From: Amoebophrya sp. A120
Taxonomy: Eukaryota; Protista; Dinoflagellata
Direction of reading: 5' to 3'
DNA: 64,000 nt
Assembly: GCA_905178155.1 (NCBI GenBank)
Contig: CAJINV010000001.1
Coordinates: forward strand, 4,013,329 to 4,077,328
Shown: one piece after another, positions 9,375 through 63,610 of the stretch
Layout of the letters: each line of letters begins with the position of its first letter
Position numbering within the stretch: the first letter of the stretch is position 1
The notes under the pieces: generated by a model
Told to the model about the DNA's origin: nothing
The model's database searches: none
Seen by the model: only the letters and a program-made list of their open reading frames with translations
Position numbers and translations under genes: made by a program

Positions 9375-10208
9375 CGTTGACGAGGACCTCCACCCTCACA
9401 CTCGTGCGCCTGACAACTGGCTTCTTGAACACAATAAATGATGAAAGTAGATCGAACAAAAGTAGTTCTTTTTTACCGAGCAGCACTTTCACCGGCGACC
9501 TCAATCTTCAACGACGCATCCCTACAGCAGCATCATGTTGCTCATCATGGTGATGAAAACCCAAAGCGTAGAAAGCTCTACGACTTGTTCTGTACGACAT
9601 CAAGGTCCCTTTGTTCATATTCGTTCCCAGTGGCCGGATGAAGATCCAGCAGCGACTGCATCTTCATCCCTTTGGGTAATTAGAGTCATTACAGCGTCGA
9701 GCGCATTCTATTGTCCCTTTCGTTGTTGCAGCTGTTGGGCGGCGCAACTAGCAATGTTTTTAGTTTTACATGTTTTTTCAATATCGTGTCGTGGTCGGGA
9801 GAGACTTCTGAGTGTATGCCTGTTGACCTCCTCGTGAGCGTGAGGGTGATGATGGAGTGACGATTAGACGTTCGTAGTTCGATTTAGAAAGAAGATGCGA
9901 GCCTTGTCTAATGAAGATTAGTGTGGGTATGCATAGAAAGAAGCTTCAGCTCTCCGACGAATAGACACGTTTTTTTTCCTATGATGACGCAACTACATCG
10001 CAACTAGTTGTTGAAGAAAGAGGTCGAGAGTGTAAACATAAGATTCTGTTGCCTTGCAGAAGTATTAGAACCGGCAGAAACAGTAGCTGTAGCTGCACCT
10101 GTAAAAATAAAAAAGATCAACGAATTGTTGATGGACCTGAACTGGCTATTAGACTGTTGAATCTAGTTGGTATTGGTACCACTGGCTCCTATCGCCGGAA
10201 CCAAAAAC

Positions 10209-12849
10209 ATGGGTAAATTTTCGGACCGTGGCTTCGTGGTCATTACTGGCGCGGCCGGTAATTTCGGTGCGGCGATGGCGAAGAAAGTGGTGGAAGAGGG
10301 GGGCTCTGTGCTTCTCATCGACACGCCGGCATTGACGAAGCCACTGGAGGCGCTGCGCGACTACCTTGCCGACCGTGCCGCGAAAATCTTCGCCGCACAA
10401 AAAAACGCGATAAAGCGCACGGTGAGCGGGACCGTGCTGAATCAACAACTTCTCTTACAACAAGGAACTTCTAGCAGAAACGGTTCCAGCAGCGATTTGC
10501 AGAAGATCCAACAAGGAAATATTAACGGGGACGCGTCGGCGTCGAACAAACCAGTGAAGCTGGAGGATGAGAACAGTACTAGCAAAAAGTCCTCCAATGG
10601 ACCGAGCAGTCCGCTTCCCCCCGGAGCCAACTCCGTGGACAACAGCGCCACAACGACCACCAGCAGTGGCGCACCCGTCGCAGCCACACCTAATGGCCCG
10701 CCGAGCATCAATGTCTACCCTCCGGCAACTGCGTTCAGTCCCGGGTCTCGCTTGTTACCGAGTCCGATGAGCCTGCCGCATCTCCAACAGCCACGCGTTT
10801 ATGAAATGCAAATATGTCTGGGTCTGGAAGAATGGAACTTGTAATGCTGTCTGCGGATTCTAAAAATAGCTGTGTTGCATGAGCAGCAAGAGGAGTCAGC
10901 TCTTGGCACGCGGAGAGGGCATTTCTCATGCGTAATTAGCATCAAGCAGCTCTCAAAAAATCTGTGATGCTAGCACCAGCATCACAGACCTCACGGGTCA
11001 TGCAAAACGTGCATGACAATCCCCGACTCTTCCAGACCCAGACATTTTTGCATTTGATAGCGTTCTCATGTTCACGATGGACGTGCGCATCGACAGCGAG
11101 ATCGCAAAAATGGAGAACTTATCCTGTGCAAAAGTATCGCACTCGTAGTAATCGCAGCTGTGCATTACAAATCTCCATCCCAAGGCAAAACAGCATGACA
11201 AATTCCACTTATCATTCTGAGCCAATTTGTAATGCGATTACTATATATTATATTCATGCGAAAAAAGAGGTAGACAGAGGGTAAACAAGAGGTGGCCGAG
11301 AGGTCAAAAAGAGGTCAAAAGAGGTAAAAAAGAGGTCGACAGAGGTGGAGAGGTGGCGCGGGACCCCTTTCGAGAGGGTCGGCGAGAGGGTGCGCGAGTA
11401 TAGCCCGCCGAAGGCCCCACCTTAAGGCGGCGCCTAAGTGCCTCAGAGGGTGCAGAGATGTCAAAAAGAGGGGGCGCGAGAGGTCGACAGAGGTCGAGAG
11501 AGGTGGCGCGAATAAGGGGCGACCTCTCGCGGACCCTCTTGGCCACCTCTCGGCCACCTCTGTCGACCTCTACTCGCGAGTATAGCCGGATTATTAGCGG
11601 GGACCCCCAAAAGAGGCAAAAAAGAGGGTCTGCGAGAGGTCTGCGAGAGGGTAAAGACACAAAGTGGTGGGCGCGAATCCGCATGGTACTACCATTATTT
11701 GGCACTGCAGGCTATTCGCGGACTTGTTTTGTTCGGCGCCTGTCCCCGCCACCCTCTCGCGCACCCTCTCGCGCACCCTCTCGCGCCACCCTCTCGCGCA
11801 CCCTCTCGCGCCACCCTCTCACAAACCTTCTCGCGCACCCTCTCGCGCCACCCTCCCGCGCTACCCTCTCGCGCCACCCTCTCGCGCTACCCTCTGCCGC
11901 CGAGCGGCTTCTGTTCGCCCCCGGCGTTCTTTGCCGCTGCTCGCTGCGCAGAGCGCCCGCAGGCGCGGGAAGCGCGCAAGTGGTCCTGCGGGTTGGCGCG
12001 GCGCAAACCGGCGGCACGAATGCAGTGTGTTTCGTTGTGCATAGGCCCGTGGGGTTGTGGTCCGGTCGGCAAATAGTCTTGCCCCGGCCCAACAGCCTTG
12101 CGCTCCGGCGGCAGCCGGAGCATGGCTGGTTACTACTAGTGCGATACTTTTCTTTGAAATGCATAGAACTTTCTGGAGCAGGAGAAGCTGATCGTCTACG
12201 GGCTCTTCAACAACGCGGGGATCCAGGGCGAAATTCAACCCATCTACGACACCACGGTGCAGGACTTTGAGAACGTCATCCAGGTGAACGTTGTCGGTGC
12301 CTTCAAGGTTTTGCGGTCCGTAACGAAGTACATGAAAGACCGAGGGCAAAAGGGCGCTGTGGTGTCAACCTCAAGCACGGCGTGGAACGGCGTGCCAAAC
12401 ATGATCGGGTATGGACGGTTAGTAATTGAGTTGTTGAAAAGACACACAGACATAGATAAACTCGATCGAGAAGTGAGATGTCAGAAACGAATCACGAATA
12501 CCACCCAAATACAACAAAAATCAGATACTCGATGTCCAAGGCCGCGGTAGTGGGCATGACGGGCAGCGCCGGCAAGGACCTGGCACCCTTCGGGATTCGC
12601 GTGAACTGCATCTCCCCGGGCCACGTGGGCGGCACCATGTGGGACCGCAAGCTGAACCTCCAGGCCAAACTGAACACGCAGTACTGGCCGCACGGGGACC
12701 CAAAGGCCATCGGCGAGGCCATGCTGAAAAAGGTTCCCCAGCGCCGAGCCGCGGACGTGACAGAAATCATCAACGTGGTTAGCTTTCTCCTCTCCGAAGA
12801 AGCATCCTTCATGACCGGGGAGAACGTGCGTGTCGCGGGCGGGGAGTAA
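10209..12849 (+). CDS. Short-chain dehydrogenase/reductase (SDR1); join(10209..10799,11065..11119,12171..12408,12525..12849)
   Basis: TGAAGNFG, NNAG, YSMSK and RVNCISPG motifs assemble after removing two IEs and one GT-AG intron (12409-12524). A long S/N/P-rich insertion follows the Rossmann N-terminus. Confidence 0.9.
10800..11059. mobile_element. Introner element, family A
   Basis: TIR TATGAAATGCAAATATGTCTGGGTCTGGAAG / CTTCCAGACCCAGACATTTTTGCATTTGATA; direct repeat GCGTT; removal gives PRV|LMFTMDV. Confidence 0.92.
11120..12165. mobile_element. Introner element, family B, carrying nested 894-bp element
   Basis: TATCCTGTGCAAAAGTATCGCACTCGTAGTA ... TACTACTAGTGCGATACTTTTCTTTGAAATGCATA; direct repeat GAACT; removal gives MEN|FLEQEKLIVYGLFNNAG. 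Confidence 0.92.
11238..12131 (+). mobile_element. 894-bp GC-rich non-coding element (N894), copy 1
   Basis: Near-identical inverted copy at 62034-62927. Internal AGAGGT(C/G) and CCCTCTCGCG repeats. 3' hairpin CTCCGGC-GGCA-GCCGGAG followed by CATGG-CTGG. Confidence 0.9.
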
Positions 12850-12863
12850 GAAGCTCTACTGTA

Positions 12864-13529
12864 CTGACGCGAATTTTGTCTGTAGACGAAAATTTTCAAA
12901 TTTTTGCTTCCCTGCCGATGTTGGATGGATGCAGGGGCGCTGATGATGATCTGTTCGCAGAATTTCTTGGGGACATATTTTGGACGTTTTCTGAAGGCAA
13001 AAAACGTCGCGCCACAAGGCGGCCGGAGAGGGAGGCCCTTTTTCGGCGGCCTACGCCGAGCTATTTCGGCCGATTTTATCGGCCAGTCTGAAAATTTGTC
13101 TGCAGCTCTCCGGGAGGGGTCGGAAACGAGGTCGTTTCCGGAGCTCCCGAGAGAGCCAAAAATGGCCAATTCGCGAGGCTTTTTTTCGGGGCCCGGCCGG
13201 AGCTATTTCGGCCGATTTTATCGGCCAGTCTGAAAATTTGTCTGCAGCTCAGGAGGAGCACTCCCAAAAGCTACCTTTTTTGGCCTCCTTCTCAAGGCCT
13301 TCAAAAACTGCCAAAAAGGCGACACCTGCCCAGCAGCTCCAAGCGCCTCCATTTGGCGCGGCTGCTACTGCCAGTCTGCCAGCCTGTTATGCCCGCCCTT
13401 GCGAATTCCTGTGGAGCCTTCCCAAAAAACCGAAACAGGTCTCACCCTTCGCGGCAGCAAGATCGCCGGGAGGGTGCTGCGGAGTGAAAAAATTTGAAAA
13501 ATTTCGTGTACAGACAAAATTCCCGGTAG
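12864..13529. mobile_element. TA-flanked MITE-like element immediately after the SDR1 stop
   Basis: TA|CTGACGCGAATTTTGTCTGTAGACGAAAATTTTCAAATTTTT is the imperfect inverse of AAAAATTTGAAAAATTTCGTGTACAGACAAAATTCCCGGTAG|TA. Internal ~50-bp direct repeat at ~13058 and ~13200. Confidence 0.85.
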
Positions 13530-27382: not shown

Positions 27383-30300
27383 ATGGGACGCGATCTGGAT
27401 AAATCCCTAGAGGAGTTGATCGACTCAGGCTCAAAAAAGAATGTCACCCTCCGCCCTAACCACAGCCAGACCGGAAGTAACACTGCCTACCCGCCCCCGC
27501 AGAACAATAACAGCTATCATGGAAACAACAACTACAGCAACAAGAACTATGGCGGCAAGAATGGGGGCGGTGTTGGAGGGTGGAACGGGGGCAGCGGGAA
27601 GAGCAATTGGAGTAACAACAGCGACCATTACGACCTGGCCTACGGGCAACCGCCAAACGCTGGCCCGCCACTGATGCAGCACCACCCGCCAGGAGCAGGC
27701 GGGGGAGCACCATGGCAACACGGCGGCCACCACCAGCCACCCCCTGCGTACTACCCACCGCAGGGCGGTCCGGGTGGGCCACCGCCCATGCAGGGCGGCG
27801 GGAAAGGTACTGGAAGATCTAATAGTCGTGTTATGAATATGATTAGATTTTTGTTTGAAAAATATGTACCAAAGCTTCGTCTACTTCTTCATCTTCTACC
27901 GAGAACGCCGTGGAGCTGTGTAGGATATTAGGCATCACTGAATCAGAATGACCATGACGATAGACTATCAAGAAAGGCTTTCAACAAAAATCTGAGAAGC
28001 GACATTGAACGACATCAACGATAATTGAATTTTCTAAACGTAAACCAAAATAGGCAACGGCTGGAGTGGTCCACCTGTCGGCGGCGTTGCTAAGCCGTTC
28101 GATAAGCGAAACCAAGCCGGTCCGTGGGGAAACGTAAAAGGAGGCATGAAAGACGCCGGTGGAATGAAAGGCCGCAAGTGGGGCGGGCACTCGCAACCGC
28201 TTGACGAAAAGGCTGCTAGGATGACCAAGATACAATTCAACAAATCCGGCGACCTCTGTGTGAAATTGTACTACTTTATCATCAGCTACTTCTGCAGTTC
28301 GTTTCTTTTTTTTTTCTCAACAAGTGAAGCTCTTGGTCACGCACCTTGCGGAAGCGGAGTGGGGAGGTCTCCCGCCTCCACGCCGGAACCAGTATGTTGA
28401 TATTTAGTAATGGCGTTTCCTAGTAATCGAATCCATTTACATTTTCGCAGGTATTGCTATTCCCGTTTCCCACCAAAACTACTAAATCTCTGCAGGTATG
28501 AAACCGATGTGTGTATTTTTCGCAAGAACCTTGCCACGTCCAAGTGTGCCAGCGTGGAGATTAACAGTGGCGGCTTCCACACGCCGGAAACGAAGGCCAT
28601 CATTCGCGAGTGCCTCCATGCCGTCGACCTGAAGATCCGGCACACGAAGAGGAGATCCGTGGTTCTGAAAGAGAATCCGAACAACAGCAAAACACCAAAG
28701 AATGACGCCAATTTATCCCCGACGACCGAAGAGGACGACAAAACGCAGAATGAAAGTGGCGAGAACAACGAGATGAATACAGCGAAAACTTCTTCGCTAG
28801 TGATCGATGGAAACGCCAGCGTCGACGCCGAAGGAGCGGCTGCTCCGGTGGTGAAGAAGCGACCACGGCTATCCTGTGTAAAAACGTCCCCACACCAGAA
28901 TTGTAATGCAGATTTGCAAACAAGACAGGAAGACTTGTAACGCGCATCCCCATGAGAGCCATTTCCAATCGCGTTTTGGAATTTGTGATGCTGTGAACAG
29001 GATGAGGAGATGAATCTGTGACGCGGCTGCACTTCCTAACCTGCACTACACTGCGGAGTGCAACTTGTCATGCGTGACTCACAAAACTCCTAGGTTTGTG
29101 TTGCAAAATCCCCTTCCTGACTCTGGTGTGGGTACGTTTTTACTCAGGATAGCGGCCCGTCGCGGGGCCAGACGATTTGGACTTCGCCGAGGAGGACGAC
29201 GATATACTGGCCGAATCCGACGAACACGAGGAAGAAAATCAAAATGCAGCTGCAGAAATAAATGCCGCCGACCCCGAGCACCAGGAAGGAGATGCTGAAA
29301 ACGAAGAAAACAAAGAAGCCGGAGACGACGAGGAGCAGGCGGCGGCAGAGCCAAATCCCAACGAGGCTTCCGGCAAGGAAAAGGAGGGTGAGGCGCCAGC
29401 GATGAGTGGGGAAGATAAGGAATCCAGGAGAAATTTCTTGGTGGAGCGGCTTGCGATGCTGAAGAAGAAAAAAGCGGAGCAGAATCAAAAACAAAAAGCT
29501 GCTACGCTGGTATATTCTTTTTGAAGTTAGAGGCCTTGTTCTGTTCTCAAAAAATAGTTTGCTGTTGGTGCAACTGATTCAAACTCTTTGTAGCAGTCAC
29601 GCACAGGTCATGCGAGGATATGCATTATGCAGGTGTCACGCGAGGTCGCAGATTTTTTCCGTATGCGATTATGGACGAAGATCATGAAGAACGTATACAA
29701 AAACCAATGCACCAGAATTACAAAACACGCAGGCACATGATGTTAAAGTTGAAATGAACTGTGACTCAGATAAAATCCGGACAAGTGGTTGCCAGCAGTT
29801 CTGTTGCGAAGAAGAAAGGGCCCCCGTGTCCGTGGACCGTTTACGGGAGAAACGTATCCTGTGCAAAAGTATCGTACTCGTAGTAATCGCAGTCATGGTG
29901 CACTACAAATCTTTTTCTTAAGGCAAATCCGCATTACAAATTCCATTTCTAATGCTAAGGAGATTTGTATTGCGATTTATAGTATAAATCGCAATACAAA
30001 TGTAGGCAAGGGAGTGAAACTTCGAAGGGAGTCAAGGGAGCCAAGGGAGGAAGATAAAATTTGTACAAATTGTCTCCCCTTAAATCATCGCCAAAATGCT
30101 GCATGCTATGGGCGCGCTTACCGGTCGCCGGCTTGCGCCCTGCTGCCCCCCCCCCCCGCTGCGGCCCCAGGTTTGTCCGCGCTTAGGCATTGGCTCGCTG
30201 CCGAAGGCCCTGGTCTCTTGAAGAAGGTGAGGGCTTCTAGAGTCGCCCCCGTCATCAACAGGAGTCGCCGGGGTGGCCTGGCCTCTGCCTGGCAACAAAG

Positions 30301-33300
30301 AGCGTGGAGCCGAAGGAACGCGTAAACTGCTGCCGTGACCATGTCGAGTTTCCGTCGTCCGGGGGAAGTCGCGGCAGCCACTTAAGCAATTTGCTTGTCG
30401 AGATCTTTCAGGCGAGGTTCTGCGTGACCAGATTCAACGTCATGCGTTGCCGAGCAGGGAATACGAAGTGGAAATGTTGAAGCGGCCACTTCGACTTTCT
30501 CCAATCGGGAAAGAGTTGCAGTGGCCGTCGGAACGCGCAGCAAGTTTGAAGCTCACACGCGTAGCATATGCAGCCTGCTTCGCGCTGATGCTACTTCGCA
30601 ACATTCCCACACGCGGGCGCATGTCTTACATGTTGCACGCGCCTCGCTGCGCGCGCGCAGCGCGCGGCCTGAAAAATTTTTGTTGTGTGCGCACAGGCGT
30701 CGATCCGCGCGCGCGCAGCGCGCGCCGCGAAAAATTTTTGCTATATGCCGATCGCATTGGCGCGCACGACTGCTTTGTTTTTTATCGTACTCCCTTGGCT
30801 CCCTTGGAAAGTTGCGCTGTACTCCCTTGGCTGGCGCCAGACACTAATAAACCTATTATACTAGTGCGATACTTTTGCAATGCATAAAACGCCGCGGGCG
30901 AACATTTCGAAATCGAGTGCTACGACGGAATCGTACTGCAAACTGTTGCTGTGCTTTTCCTATTTGCCCCAGTTCCTTGACAAAAGTAAAAAAGTAGAGC
31001 AGTATTGGATTCTTCCAGCTACAGTTTCCAGCGCATATCCATATCCGTTTCGAAGTCTTGCTGCAGCAAATAACATATAACAAGTTCTATGATGCATACT
31101 TTACTTACTACAGGTCATCTCACTCCCCAACGCTCTGACGGTGCTTGGAAAGCTGAAAGGCAAACTGATGGACCGCATGCGGTTCTTACGCAACGAACAA
31201 CCGCTCTATCCGCAGCGCGGCATGCACCACGGCGGTCCACCAGGAGCACCAGGTGCCCCCCCGCACGGCGGACCACCTCCACCAGGGATGCATCACATGC
31301 ACCCGCAGCAACCCGCACCTCCGGGTGCTGGGGTTCAACCGAGCAACCTCCCACCCGGAGTGCAGCCAGGACAGGTGATCTACCAAATTCCCCACGGCGC
31401 GGCTCCGCCACCGAATCTGCCACCGGGATCCGTCGTTCAGTACTTACCACCGGGACAAGTAGTACACGCACCGGGAGGACCGGCGCAAGCACAGTATCTA
31501 CTAATGATTTTATTCTATCAGTACAACTCTAGCGCCGCGAGCGCCATCACTACAGGATGAAGCGAGCAGGAGCTCTGGACTACTTTTTTTATTTTTCATC
31601 ACTCGGCATATGCTTACGATTACTATAGCCTTCGGTTGGAAATCTTGTTCAGAAGGCGTGTGATATAACTAGCGGCACCTCGAGGAGGTGCGATCGAGGA
31701 GTTGTCCTAAGGCTAGAATAAAGTCGCGGAGGATCATGGCAATACGTCATGGCAATCAAATTTATTGTGTTTATCATTTTTTCATTACCGAATTTTATGT
31801 GGTCCAATTCCCATGATGATATAACTGATATAACGGAAATTAAAAATTTTCGCCCATGGGAGGGCACCGCGCGAGGCCCATCGTTGCCGTGGTCTGTCTG
31901 CCCGGGGATTCGTCGGCATAGCGTAAACCCCTCGGCCGTTCTGCGCAATGCCTCCGCAGCGGCTGGTCGACTCAGCGTCATGAAATTCGCGAGAGATGGC
32001 ACGGCCAAAGACCTGCCCGCGGTTCTCTCTGAAGCCTTTCGGCTTGACCGCGCCGGTGCGGCGGCGCTCTGTAACTGCAACCAAGGGCGCTGCGTAATTT
32101 TCGAAGCGCCCGCCGAGCGACGTTGTAGAAGTAGCAGCCCCGGCTTGGCGATATCGGTCGTGAACGCCGGCGGCCTCACCGGCTGGGAAAGCCGGCGCCT
32201 CCCCGCGGGCCCCGCTACGATCTCGTATTGGGACGACGCGAGAACGGTCGATATCAAAGCGATCGATGTCGCATGATCTCCACCTGATCTCCCCCGCGAT
32301 CTCGTTGATTTCGTGCCCAATGTCGCTGATCTCGCGGACGGAAATTCATGATCTCCCGCCTGATCTCCCCCGCGATCTCGCTGATCTCGTGCCCGATCTC
32401 GTTGATCTCGCGGGCGGAAATTCATTCTACAGCGAAAATGGGAAGGAATTTTCGACCTGCGGGCGCTGGCCAGTAAGATCAATTTTGGCCGTGAGTTATA
32501 TCGCAGCGAGATCGGCGGGAGGGGGTGCGAGATCGGCCGGAGATCGCCGCGAGATCGGCCGGTGATCGGCACGAGATCAGCGAGATCGGGAGTCCGCTTT
32601 CGTGGATCTCGCTATGGTGCCGGGACGAGGTTGGGGGCTCTTGCTCGTAAGATCAGGAGCCCCCGATCCTGCCAGCTTATTTATCTGTGCCCGCGCTCTG
32701 AGTGAGCGCGGGTTCGAAGCTGGGTCACGACTTCGGGCTTCGGGGGCACCATGACCGAGAGCGCCGAGTGTTGTTCCGATTGGTTGCGGCTGCGTGAGAA
32801 GTTTTGTGAGCTTCTGGCGCGGGTGTGGCACTGTGTGGCGCTGCTGGGGGCCCGGCCCCTGTGAATTTGCGTGCGCACCTGTGACCAACAGAAAGTGGTC
32901 GAGCGTCGCACTTGTACCACTGCGACGGACGCATCCACTTCGGCGCACTATGTCAAGGCGCGAGGAAAGCAGCGCTAGAACCTGCCTACGCGCTTGGTCA
33001 CATTTGCGCGAACCCGGGGCGCGAAATTTTTAAAATCGGTTACATGCGTAAGATCATCTTGGGAACTTGGACCACTTGACGAATTATCCGAAACTAAACA
33101 AACAGGATCGTCCACGTTCTACCAGCGGGAAGTCCTTCGGGCCACCACGCGCAAAATCATGCTGGCAGCAATTCAGACAATGAGGATCTGAAATGGGGCC
33201 GCGCAGCGCAAGGCGGCACGAGCGGCGGTGGCGCCATCCGGCTGGTTTCCGCAGCCGAGAAGCAGCAACGAGACAACCGCCCACAGTATAACCAAGTGCA

Positions 33301-60881: not shown

Positions 60882-63610
60882 CCAAAGAGTCGTCCAGCGC
60901 TTCGCTTCCGTCGCTTGCTCTCCAACGAGGTCATGTTTCAGGACCGCGTTCGCCAGCTTGGCATCGACGAGCGCACGGCGCCGTACGATGCGGAAGCTGG
61001 TGCCGTATCAAATGTAAAACTGTATGGGTCTGGAAGATTACAACTTGTCATGCTAAATCTGCAGCATGCAGAAATCTGTGTTGCATGATTACCAAAAGTC
61101 GTCCAGTTTTGACCAAGTCTGGAAGTTGTTTCTCACGCAGGGACTAGGCATTAGAAAGGTCTCGCAGAATCTGTCATGCTAGGTCCTGCATTCCAGACCT
61201 CATGGGTCATGGAAAAGCAGCGTGACAAATCGCGCACTCATCTTCCAGACCCAGACATATTTGCAATCCATATGCCGGGCGGTGGTTCGATTCCAGTGGG
61301 CAGCTGAGCAACGGCAACAGCCCCTCGATGCCCAGCCGAGTGGGAGTGAAATCCAGGAGTAAACAAGGGCTGTTGAGCAACTCGCAAGGAAACTACCCCG
61401 GTTTCGAGAACAATCCAGCCTTTACCTTTAAAGACGCAAGGTCCGCCAGGGACGACGAGCGCGACGATATCGTGACTGGAAGGTATGCGACATTTCAACA
61501 AGATCAAGCCGGACGAGGTGCCTCTCCATCCAGCCCAAAAAACGACCTATTCCGGCAGCGACTCGCGGAGCTGGAACGAACTTTAGAGGGGCCAGTGCCG
61601 GGGTTGGGAACAACCGCGAACAGCAACCGATTCGGCATGCACCCGGCGTTTCGGGAGCAGATTTCCAACTTGCGCGGGAAGCTGATCCACGTCGGCGAGC
61701 GGTTATGAAAGTGCACACGTACCCTTTCCCTTGATTTGTGATGCAAAATTCCAAGTCCAATTGCTGCCTTGTAACACTGTTTGCATGATAGATTCCAGAA
61801 GCTGCCCAAACAGGACTAGTATGGGTGCATGATGAACTTGTAATGCATAGGGTCCACGTGTGGCGGTGTTTGTATTACTGTCCATGCAATACAAACGAGG
61901 GAAAGGGGGAGTTGTGCACGCTCATAGCGGTTCGTCGGCTTCGACAAAAACATGGAGGAACTCGCGCACATGCGGAAGGTGTCCGAGGAAGCGCGGGTGC
62001 AGATATGCATTACAAAAGTATCGCACTAGTATAAACCAGCCATGCTCCGGCTGCCGCCGGAGCGCAAGGCTGTTGGGCCGGGGCAAGACTATTTGCCGAC
62101 CGGACCACAACCCCACGGGCCTATGCACAACGAAACTCACTGCATTCGTGCCGCCGGTTTGCGCCGCGCCAACCCGCAGGACCACTTGCGCGCTTCCCGC
62201 GCCTGCGGGCGCTCTGCGCAGCGAGCAGCGGCAAAGAACGCCGGGGGCGAACAGAAGCCGCTCGGCGGCAGAGGGTAGCGCGAGAGGGTGGCGCGAGAGG
62301 GTAGCGCGGGAGGGTGGCGCGAGAGGGTGCGCGAGAAGGTTTGTGAGAGGGTGGCGCGAGAGGGTGCGCGAGAGGGTGGCGCGAGAGGGTGCGCGAGAGG
62401 GTGCGCGAGAGGGTGGCGGGGACAGGCGCCGAACAAAACAAGTCCGCGAATAGCCTGCAGTGCCAAATAATGGTAGTACCATGCGGATTCGCGCCCACCA
62501 CTTTGTGTCTTTACCCTCTCGCAGACCTCTCGCAGACCCTCTTTTTTGCCTCTTTTGGGGGTCCCCGCTAATAATCCGGCTATACTCGCGAGTAGAGGTC
62601 GACAGAGGTGGCCGAGAGGTGGCCAAGAGGGTCCGCGAGAGGTCGCCCCTTATTCGCGCCACCTCTCTCGACCTCTGTCGACCTCTCGCGCCCCCTCTTT
62701 TTGACATCTCTGCACCCTCTGAGGCACTTAGGCGCCGCCTTAAGGTGGGGCCTTCGGCGGGCTATACTCGCGCACCCTCTCGCCGACCCTCTCGAAAGGG
62801 GTCCCGCGCCACCTCTCCACCTCTGTCGACCTCTTTTTTACCTCTTTTGACCTCTTTTTGACCTCTCGGCCACCTCTTGTTTACCCTCTGTCTACCTCTT
62901 TTTTCGCATGAATATAATATATAGTAACTGCATCACAAATTTTTCAAGAACATCAAAAATGGAATTTGTCATGCTATATCAGGTAGAAAGTTGGAGTTGG
63001 ACTTCTTTGTCATGCATGACTGCAATTAGTACGAGTGCGGTACTTTTGCAGTGGATAACAGAGCATGATAGACGACCTCACCAAGTTGGAGCGGGCACTG
63101 AACACCGAGGTGCGGCGAAGAGTCGACTACACGCGGACGCTGCAGATTGTGACCGAAAACTACGCGAACGAAATGCTGGACAAACTGCAGAAAAAACTCA
63201 TGCGACAAATGGAACAGATCATCGCGGCACTGGATTCCTTGTCTGCGAGGTAAAAATGGAAAGTCTACTTCCAAGTAACATGCGAATCTACTTGTTATAC
63301 TGAATTTCTAGGCCTAGCTACATATGCATTTATTTGGAAGTGCGGCTGCGCAGTAACGAAAGATAGCTGCGGAGGACGAAATTGAATACATTGACATTCA
63401 CAAAATGGATGACGCAGATGCCTCACTCTGGAGCGCGGCATGATGCAGTTCCGCGGCGAGCTCCCATCGAAGCTGATGGTCGAGACGGACGCCATGGCGC
63501 GGCGGGTTGCCGACATGAAGAAGGACCTGCAAGTTGTTGCGGACGAAATCCGGGGTGATGGCTCGGCGGACCGGATGATCGGACAACTAGAGTACGCCAT
63601 TGATCATCAG
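60882..63610 (+). CDS. SF-assemblin/beta-giardin family protein, both ends uncertain; join(<60882..61005,61278..61703,61932..62003,63063..63249,63418..>63610)
   Basis: LTKLERALNTEVRRRVDYTRTLQ coiled-coil signature. The frame is continuous after three IEs and one GT-AG intron, and a further donor lies at 63611. Confidence 0.75.
61006..61272. mobile_element. Introner element, family A
   Basis: TATCAAATGTAAAACTGTATGGGTCTGGAAGA / TCTTCCAGACCCAGACATATTTGCAATCCATA; direct repeat TGCCG. Confidence 0.9.
61704..61926. mobile_element. Introner element, family F
   Basis: TATGAAAGTGCACA / TGTGCACGCTCATA; direct repeat GCGGT; removal gives GER|FVGFDKN. Confidence 0.9.
62004..63057. mobile_element. Introner element, family B (reverse orientation), carrying nested N894
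   Basis: TATGCATTACAAAAGTATCGCACTAGTA ... TACGAGTGCGGTACTTTTGCAGTGGATA; direct repeat GCAGA/ACAGA. Confidence 0.9.
62034..62927 (-). mobile_element. N894 element, copy 2
   Basis: Reverse complement of 11238-12131, same length; I noticed only one substitution. Confidence 0.9.

Follow-up and report, generated by a model that had tools for sequence, protein, structure and literature searches.

The 64,000-nt stretch of Amoebophrya sp. A120 DNA analyzed here (contig CAJINV010000001.1, positions 4,013,329 to 4,077,328, forward strand; below, the window) contains two copies, A and B, of a repeat of approximately 0.9 kb, N894, each of which lies inside an introner of the same family (family B) and interrupts it at the same position. 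Farhat et al. (2021, PMC7789003) described non-canonical introner elements by the thousand, which end in inverted repeats and have short direct repeats spanning their borders, and the introners of A120 have been assigned to terminal inverted repeat (TIR), long terminal repeat (LTR), and non-LTR transposons (Gozashti et al. 2025, PMC12130899); neither paper refers to Helitrons or nested elements in A120. The intron set of the 2021 study was limited to 40–1000 bp and, consequently, excluded the 1.05-kb composites of introner and N894. Family-B introners have a TIR of approximately 27 nt and internal GCATNACAAAT/ATTTGTNATGC palindromes, and their arms about the insertion point measure approximately 108 nt (plus approximately 10 nt of outer terminus) on one side and approximately 30 nt on the other. 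The features of the two loci were as follows:

11114..12164, + strand: composite intron (introner plus N894) with the AGAACTT direct repeat at its borders, missing from the transcript contig
11120..11237, + strand: left arm of host family-B introner A, with the terminal repeat, the internal palindromes, and TTTGTAATGCGA abutting the insertion point
11136..11156, − strand: vacant mirror site in the left terminal repeat of introner A, TGCGA-TT-AC-TACGAG... (C1:4024464-4024484 in the genome list)
11238..12129, + strand: N894 copy A, element proper, 5'-TTACTAT...CATGGCTGG-3', with borders set by the ends of similarity in 60 copies and by the single TT of empty sites
11238..11263, + strand: 5' terminal sequence TTACTATATATTATATTCATGCGAAA, hairpin-free; across 58 copies, the first 30 nt of the element show a column identity of 95%
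12103..12129, + strand: 3' terminal signal, a hairpin (7-bp stem CTCCGGC/GCCGGAG, 4-nt loop) and, after it, CATGGCTGG with CTGG (CTRR) as its end, identified by folding and conservation
12130..12165, + strand: right arm of host introner A, TT-AC-TACTAGTGCGATACTTTT..., terminal inverted repeat
62004..62035, − strand: right arm of host introner B, adjoining the 3' end of N894
62036..62927, − strand: N894 copy B, with 1 mismatch relative to copy A by alignment
62928..63057, − strand: left arm of host introner B, approximately 30% diverged from the left arm of introner A

The segments 11238-12131 (+ strand) and 62034-62927 (− strand), which form the inverted repeat I1 (99%), were aligned over 894 nt with 1 mismatch, whereas the p-distance between the surrounding introner arms was 0.307 (approximately 30%) as against 0.0011 within N894. 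Both copies were flanked by ...TTTGTNATGC(GA/AG) and TT-NN-TACTAGTGCGATACTTTT and had an identical orientation relative to the introner. Thus, the near-identity of the two copies, the divergence of their hosts, and the common site and orientation noticed in the first-pass annotation were all borne out, as was the hairpin CTCCGGC-GGCA-GCCGGAG followed by CATGGCTGG (12103-12129 in copy A). Two of its details had to be narrowed. The extent of 894 bp holds for the alignment, but the trailing TT (12130-12131) is most simply read as host sequence, so that the element proper corresponds to 11238-12129. The TIR described as left intact is so only in its outer part: the insertion separates the inner 5 nt (TGCRA) of the approximately 27-nt TIR, and the outer 22 nt or so stay joined to the introner end.

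Removal of the composite from RNA was seen in a 1,472-nt contig of run X1 (depth 123), which joined positions 9963-10794, 11060-11113, 12165-12407, and 12524-12862 and skipped the 1,051-nt composite (11114-12164), together with a 265-nt introner that belongs to another family and a 116-nt canonical GT-AG intron. The type of this run was guessed, and the contig was taken as complementary DNA (cDNA) because the canonical GT-AG intron was missing as well. The exons, joined and translated only for a reading-frame check, gave an uninterrupted short-chain dehydrogenase frame (...KMENFLEQEKLIVYGLFNNAG...). The word depth inside N894 was 0–5 vs. 123 in the exons of the same run, which indicates low retention of the composite. 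Its borders lay within the 7-nt direct repeat AGAACTT and were ambiguous by 0–7 nt, with a GT-AG pair in none of the eight registers, which agrees with the published description of introners; together with the approximately 27-nt TIR and the precise removal in the transcript contig, these features define the host of copy A as an introner. Splicing of the 1.05-kb composite, which the first-pass annotation had expected, was therefore supported for copy A, with exactly 1,051 nt removed. Copy B lies within an apparent reading frame, which it interrupts, with a 4-nt repeat at its flanks. The neighboring 265-nt introner (10795-11059) has the ends TATGAAATGCAAATATGTCTGGGTC and GACCCAGACATTTTTGCATTTGATA and a 5-nt direct repeat, GCGTT; it was removed in the same transcript contig and likewise has no GT-AG register. 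Runs X8-X10 (RNA-seq of 2026, labelled as the same species) contributed 0–5 reads to window positions 9500-13500, which belong to an expressed gene, and were uninformative; reads of the host dinoflagellate may prevail in them, or they may derive from another strain.

The assembly searched comprised 115,520,608 bases, with a largest contig of 16.50 Mb. A search with N894 revealed full-length copies with 84–100% identity. The 16-nt 3' end of the element occurred 171 times genome-wide vs. 2 times for the reversed control, so that the repeat is far beyond chance, and an 18-mer near the 5' end occurred 149 times (control 0). In total, 61 distinct copies of approximately 171, that is, about a third, were read base by base (length 762–2,087 nt, median 872 nt), and the remaining numbers are pattern counts. 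Among the copies read, 43 of 61 were located at exactly TGCRA^TT-NN-TACTAG of family-B introners and 1 more was off by one base. The genome-wide tabulation of flanks, suggested as a check in the first-pass annotation, revealed that 72 of the 171 3' ends (42% of the family) join the family-B right arm at the identical nucleotide (control 0), and that at least 24 further exact junctions consist of the 3' end, 1–4 nt, and then TTGTNATGC (approximately 0.2 expected). The insertions adjacent to TTGTNATGC were found, among the copies read, in at least two introner families other than B. A few copies lay outside recognizable introners and had the same ends as other N894 elements. Two contigs of an independent public assembly, JACKZZ010006514.1 (L078) and JACKZZ010022898.1 (L079), carried N894 with approximately 90% identity at the same family-B site and may come from a related strain or species with both transposon families; a comparison of the unique flanks of a JACKZZ01 contig with the A120 genome matched only repeats and gave no orthologous empty site among the candidates scored. 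Five other hits of the metagenome scan (L077, L080-L083) were discarded as chance matches of 20–24 nt. Two composites located 10 kb apart (L035, C2:2368028-2368879, and L036, C2:2378179-2379030) have identical arms and outer flanks and, therefore, represent a local segmental duplication rather than two insertions; one of them runs into a stretch of N.

The boundaries of N894 were compared in 60 unique copies. The base before the element was A in 57 of 60 copies, the element began with TT in 58 (and with TC in one), and in all 60 its end was CTGG, with T as the next base. The hairpin stem was kept in 59 of 60 copies with a variable loop (GGCA, GTTA, or GGTA), and, folded as single-stranded DNA, the 3' hairpin had an energy of −15.5 kcal/mol (z = −2.6). 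Column identity was 95% at the 5' end, 96–98% in the last 54 nt of the 3' end, 97–99% in two internal blocks, and 40–80% in the central stretch, so that the termini are among the most conserved parts of the element. Empty family-B sites, TGCRA-TT-NN-TACTAG, carry a single TT; thus, a filled site differs from an empty one only by the element itself, without duplication or loss of target bases, and the simplest insertion register is A^[TT...CTGG]^T. No terminal inverted repeats were found between the N894 ends, and the absence of both its own TIR and a target-site duplication (TSD), as reported in the first-pass annotation, was upheld. No 5' hairpin was found, the 5' end being unstructured on folding. 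N894 contains no credible open reading frame (ORF), those present being low-complexity artefacts of GC-rich repeats, and searches with Rfam covariance models gave only sub-threshold microRNA-like chance matches (E = 0.19–0.63).

Helitrons are characterized by a 3' hairpin followed by approximately 10 nt ending in CTRR, insertion into A^T, and the absence of TIR and TSD (PMC11417382). N894 shares with canonical Helitrons (HLE1) the 3' hairpin with a short spacer and a CTRR end, A^T insertion without a TSD, and the lack of a TIR, so that the Helitron-type ends proposed earlier were recovered in 60 copies, except that the 5' end is TT rather than TC. In PMC11417382, the only element for which a 5' TT is reported is a proto-Helentron. 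Judged from these sequence features, N894 may be called Helitron-like but not a proven member of the group, given the lack of a 5' TC and a link to a Rep/helicase that is only putative. Assignment to Helitron2/Helentron (HLE2) was rejected, since N894 lacks TIRs of 12–16 nt and, read in the alternative register, its insertion sites elsewhere than in family B are T^A or T^C, not T^T. A site-specific non-LTR retrotransposon or short interspersed nuclear element was likewise rejected (59 of the 60 copies run the full length from a precise 5' end, and there is neither an A-tail nor a TSD), as was a group II intron or known structured RNA (no Rfam match).

Independent insertion was evaluated by comparing distances in 38 family-B copies and by constructing an arm tree (38 occupied, 18 empty). 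The mean distance among the 38 copies was 0.067 for N894 and 0.216 for the host arm, and the two distances were uncorrelated (Mantel r = −0.11; 1,698 of 2,000 permutations at least as high). In 20 pairs, N894 sequences were less than 1% apart in arms that were 15–31% apart, and in a second introner family the elements were 0.9% apart and their flanks 31% apart. Four copies identical over 787 nt differed at −2 (G/A) and at NN just past the right junction, that is, 2 nt to the left and 3–4 nt to the right of the junctions. The mean arm distance was 0.206 within occupied arms, 0.201 within empty arms, and 0.204 between them; the occupied/empty label changed 16 times on the arm tree vs. 15.5 ± 1.4 times for shuffled labels, and a single occupied clade was rejected by the approximately unbiased (AU) test (delta lnL = 130, p = 0.0014). 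Consequently, the single-clade scenario failed in the comparison of host and element phylogenies that had been set beforehand as the refuting test, and, given uncorrelated distances, interspersed hosts, and rejected monophyly, a single insertion followed by co-transposition is rejected as a general explanation. The insertion was repeated dozens of times, separately, at one exact nucleotide of the introner family. Gene conversion is unlikely to be the source of this pattern, because it would have to stop exactly at the element ends each time and would leave the copies in unrelated sequence unexplained. Meanwhile, a few groups had matched divergence in arms and N894 (L026/L027/L028, 4–8% in both, and L018/L066), and composites may occasionally have moved as a unit.

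The site used in family B is TTTGTNATGCRA^TTNNTACTAG. The exact 21-mer TGCRATTNNTACTAGTRCGAT was found empty 1,498 times and filled 57 times, whereas the mirror site TGCRATTNNTACGAGTRCGAT in the opposite terminal repeat was found empty 1,910 times and filled 0 times in a junction search tolerating three mismatches (Fisher p = 8 × 10−21). None of the 72 family-B junctions was of the TACGAG type. The two sites differ by one base (T/G) in the local 21-mer; TTTGTNATGC abuts the used site, whereas it is 9 nt off at the mirror site in introner A. The orientation of N894 relative to the motif is constant, after the motif in family B and before it in other families, which points to strand-specific recognition of the target. 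The preference for family-B introners proposed in the first-pass annotation stands in so far as 72 copies share one nucleotide, vs. approximately 0.02 hits expected there from 171 random A^T insertions, but it covers 42% of the family rather than the whole. The family-B target TT-NN-TA resembles the N894 5' end TT-AC-TA, a sequence likeness that may be regarded as a lead only. In single-strand folds of the introner, the site lies where the terminal-repeat stem meets an inner stem, although these folds gave no decisive structural rule for site choice.

A sister introner subfamily ends in ...AAATTTGTAATGCA-TT-TN-TACGAG vs. ...ATGCRA-TT-NN-TACTAG (flanks of L009, L015, L016, L020, L021, L023, L028, and L057); none of the N894 copies read was located in this subfamily, which was thus unoccupied in a small sample. 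Elsewhere in the window, whose GC content is 51.6%, a repeat of approximately 0.86 kb (30003-30860; approximately 10 genomic copies at 84–94%) lies, a few bases away from the N894 site, within a family-B introner, with a 19-nt fold-back copy of the introner flank at its left junction (29963-30001). It was considered as an unrelated second element targeting introners and rejected, as the others of its approximately 10 copies do not continue into family-B arms.

The genome contains six uninterrupted ORFs of 1,029–2,028 aa with both the Helitron_like_N (PF14214) and PIF1 (PF05970) domains, as well as longer elements with N894-type 5' and 3' ends:

C10:259181-261664: Rep/helicase frame, PF14214 and PF05970
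C5:4566508-4569000: Rep/helicase frame, the same domains
C10:651513-653861: Rep/helicase frame, the same domains
C3:592213-594513: Rep/helicase frame, the same domains
C17:243808-246040: Rep/helicase frame, the same domains
C3:5504782-5507049: Rep/helicase frame, the same domains
C5:7641343-7644708: element with N894-type ends, 3.3 kb
C14:169165-174755: element with N894-type ends, 5.6 kb
C4:2495194-2497280: element with N894-type ends, 2.09 kb (L047)

Two of the six frames were near-identical and located on different contigs, which suggests recently active autonomous Helitrons, and the six intact frames indicate that a putative source of Rep/helicase in trans exists in the genome. A protein search with one frame gave only two distant relatives (38–41% identity), the genome's own protein not being among the matches. 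No N894-like termini were found within the 3.4-kb Rep/helicase loci that were read. The search for an autonomous partner proposed in the first-pass annotation succeeded as regards the presence of such frames, but none of them was tied to N894 ends. Of 100 listed 5' ends, 38 had no listed exact-match 3' end within 1.1 kb downstream, and two were paired with a 3' end at 3.3 kb and 5.6 kb; the unpaired ends would fit chimeric or read-through relatives. The 2.09-kb (L047) and 3.3-kb (L011 with L061) elements contain GC-rich non-coding inserts with no credible ORF.

Taken together, these data are best explained by a young, non-coding, non-autonomous rolling-circle (Helitron-type) family of approximately 170 copies, which integrates strand-specifically at an introner motif and is passively spliced out with its host; the probability of this explanation is estimated at roughly 65%. 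The cis signals are the conserved 5' end TTACTAT... and the 3' hairpin with CATGGCTGG behind it. Acting in trans, a Rep/helicase would nick the 5' end of N894, and one strand would be copied or released up to the hairpin-CTGG terminator, presumably as a single-stranded or circular intermediate. This strand would then be joined, without target duplication, into the A^T beside the TTTGTNATGC motif of an introner, a motif perhaps recognized as single-stranded DNA at the foot of the palindromic stems. Current subfamilies would insert 2 nt after the motif in family B (TGCRA^TT-NN-TACTAG), and older ones 1–4 nt before the motif in other families. With the removal signals at the extreme ends of the introner, the pre-mRNA would lose the 0.9-kb passenger along with the introner, leaving the host gene intact; since the terminal signals still give precise removal, the insertion would be nearly neutral, and this near-neutrality would enable a lineage with one kind of target site to survive in a genome dense with genes. 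The introner would then be a multicopy safe landing site, a "safe harbor" in terms of selection and not of demonstrated function.

Several observations weigh against this explanation. The element begins with TT in 58 of 60 copies instead of the TC of HLE1, and the register T^[TAC...CTGGT]^T is equally compatible with the family-B sites. Among the exact (0-mismatch) matches listed for the N894 5' or 3' terminus, there is none with a Rep/helicase frame less than 10 kb away. Single-nucleotide specificity for a long motif is, to our knowledge, not known in canonical Helitrons. Finally, the case for splicing comprises one contig, for copy A, from a run whose RNA nature is presumed. One alternative is that the non-autonomous element is moved by another kind of site-specific enzyme, for example a tyrosine recombinase of the Crypton type or some other integrase, acting on a circular intermediate whose joined ends (CTGG|TT) recombine with the TT of the introner site. 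Such a recombinase would fit the absence of a TIR and TSD, the short identity (TT, often TTNNTA) common to the 5' end and the target, and a site and orientation specificity that is strong and unusual for Helitrons; moreover, Cryptons and Helitrons are hard to distinguish without an autonomous copy (Gozashti et al. 2025, PMC12130899). However, a 3' hairpin 9 nt from a CTRR end together with an A^T junction are specific Helitron hallmarks, and intact Rep/helicase ORFs are present in the genome. In addition, only T or TT is shared between the N894 ends and the target at all sites, and the single T shared at sites outside family B is too little for a recombinase crossover region, which makes this alternative unlikely.

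The remaining alternatives dispense with site-specific transposition of N894. Gene conversion or homing-like repair could copy N894 from filled to empty introners, with the terminal repeat and TTTGTNATGC as homology arms; as homologous sequence flanks every family-B copy on both sides, it would also yield the same site each time, and concerted evolution could keep the interiors alike. Yet identity ends exactly at the element ends, the copies identical over 787 nt differ at −2 and at NN, the arms are only 70–85% alike with a left anchor of approximately 12 nt, the same ends are present where homology is absent, namely, in unrelated introner families and outside introners, and the termini are more conserved than the interior, so that this mechanism is very unlikely. 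The spread by introner transposition of one 1.05-kb composite, formed by a single entry of N894, could account for the groups of matched divergence noted above; it is highly improbable for the family as a whole, given that arm and N894 distances are uncorrelated, occupied arms are interspersed and do not form a clade, and identical N894 sequences lie in arms 15–31% apart. Co-transposition of composites therefore survives only as a minor additional route. Random insertion into A^T with selection retaining only the copies in spliceable introners would agree with the loss of exon insertions to be expected in a gene-dense genome, but selection cannot explain one nucleotide and one orientation within a 150-nt intron, nor the complete avoidance of the mirror site of the same intron at the significance given above, and this scenario is scarcely credible. 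A further proposal concerns the target rather than the origin of the pattern, namely, that the N894 integrase reads the TTTGTNATGC hairpin motif, which recurs in introner families otherwise unrelated to one another, because the motif is a functional site of introner mobilization, introners and N894 sharing HUH/Rep-type or motif-binding machinery. This proposal is speculative and rather improbable; if true, shared machinery would explain the spread of A120 introners, for which no conventional transposase has been found, and N894 would mark its site of action.

An extra 0.9 kb between the terminal repeats is compatible with precise introner removal, and the signals needed for it must consequently lie in the outer 30 nt or so on one side and approximately 110 nt on the other. 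The used site and the never-used mirror site, which differ by one base in the 21-mer plus the upstream context, constitute a substrate pair for studying Rep/HUH recognition, and TTTGTNATGC, which is common to several introner families, is marked as a site recognized by a protein or through its structure. Intron catalogs limited to 1 kb overlook N894 composites. The literature search yielded no description of introner targeting by an element of the Helitron type, and N894 would be the first Helitron-type element found with single-nucleotide, strand-specific target choice.

Among known systems, the closest at the level of the host are the Amoebophrya introners themselves (PMC7789003, PMC12130899), as the hosts of N894 are such elements, bounded by TIRs and direct repeats and removed without GT-AG borders; N894 is a passenger within the introner and not an introner itself. 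Canonical Helitrons (HLE1) resemble N894 in the absence of a TIR and TSD, A^T insertion, a 3' hairpin with CTRR, and conserved termini around a variable non-coding interior, as well as in the presence of Rep/helicase ORFs in the same genome, whereas N894 differs in its 5' TT and in targeting, strand-specifically and with single-nucleotide precision, a motif of approximately 12–20 nt inside another transposon. The proto-Helentron of Phytophthora (5' TT, 3' CTAG; PMC11417382) is similar to N894 in the 5' TT and the CTRR-type 3' end; however, it has short TIRs and a 5' stem-loop on HELIANO re-analysis (PMC11417382), neither of which is present in N894, and, so far as can be judged, there is no phylogenetic relationship between them.

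In function, N894 is closest to bacterial HUH transposons with sequence-specific targets and to Tx1L, R1/R2, and Pokey, which are confined to safe sites present in many copies. Bacterial HUH transposons (IS200/IS605, e.g., IS608, and IS91) also lack a TSD and TIR, carry a subterminal hairpin, and insert in one orientation by a short specific sequence. In HUH single-strand transposons, the target resembles the element's own cleavage-site sequence, to which the TTNNTA common to the N894 5' end and the family-B target may be compared. Unlike N894, these transposons are prokaryotic, and in IS200/IS605 elements both ends carry hairpins and only the left flank is conserved, whereas the older relatives of N894 have the conserved motif on the right flank. 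The Tx1L retrotransposon of Xenopus inserts inside the Tx1D DNA transposon and, thus, has a target located within another transposon, as N894 does. R1/R2 and Pokey in ribosomal DNA (PMC3849761) are, like N894, parasites restricted to one tolerated site in a multicopy sequence. R1/R2, Pokey, and Tx1L belong to other enzyme classes (non-LTR reverse transcriptase/endonuclease, piggyBac), and none of them is known to target an intron-forming transposon whose removal from RNA neutralizes the insertion; N894 would be the first transposon found to have an intron-forming transposon as its preferred target.

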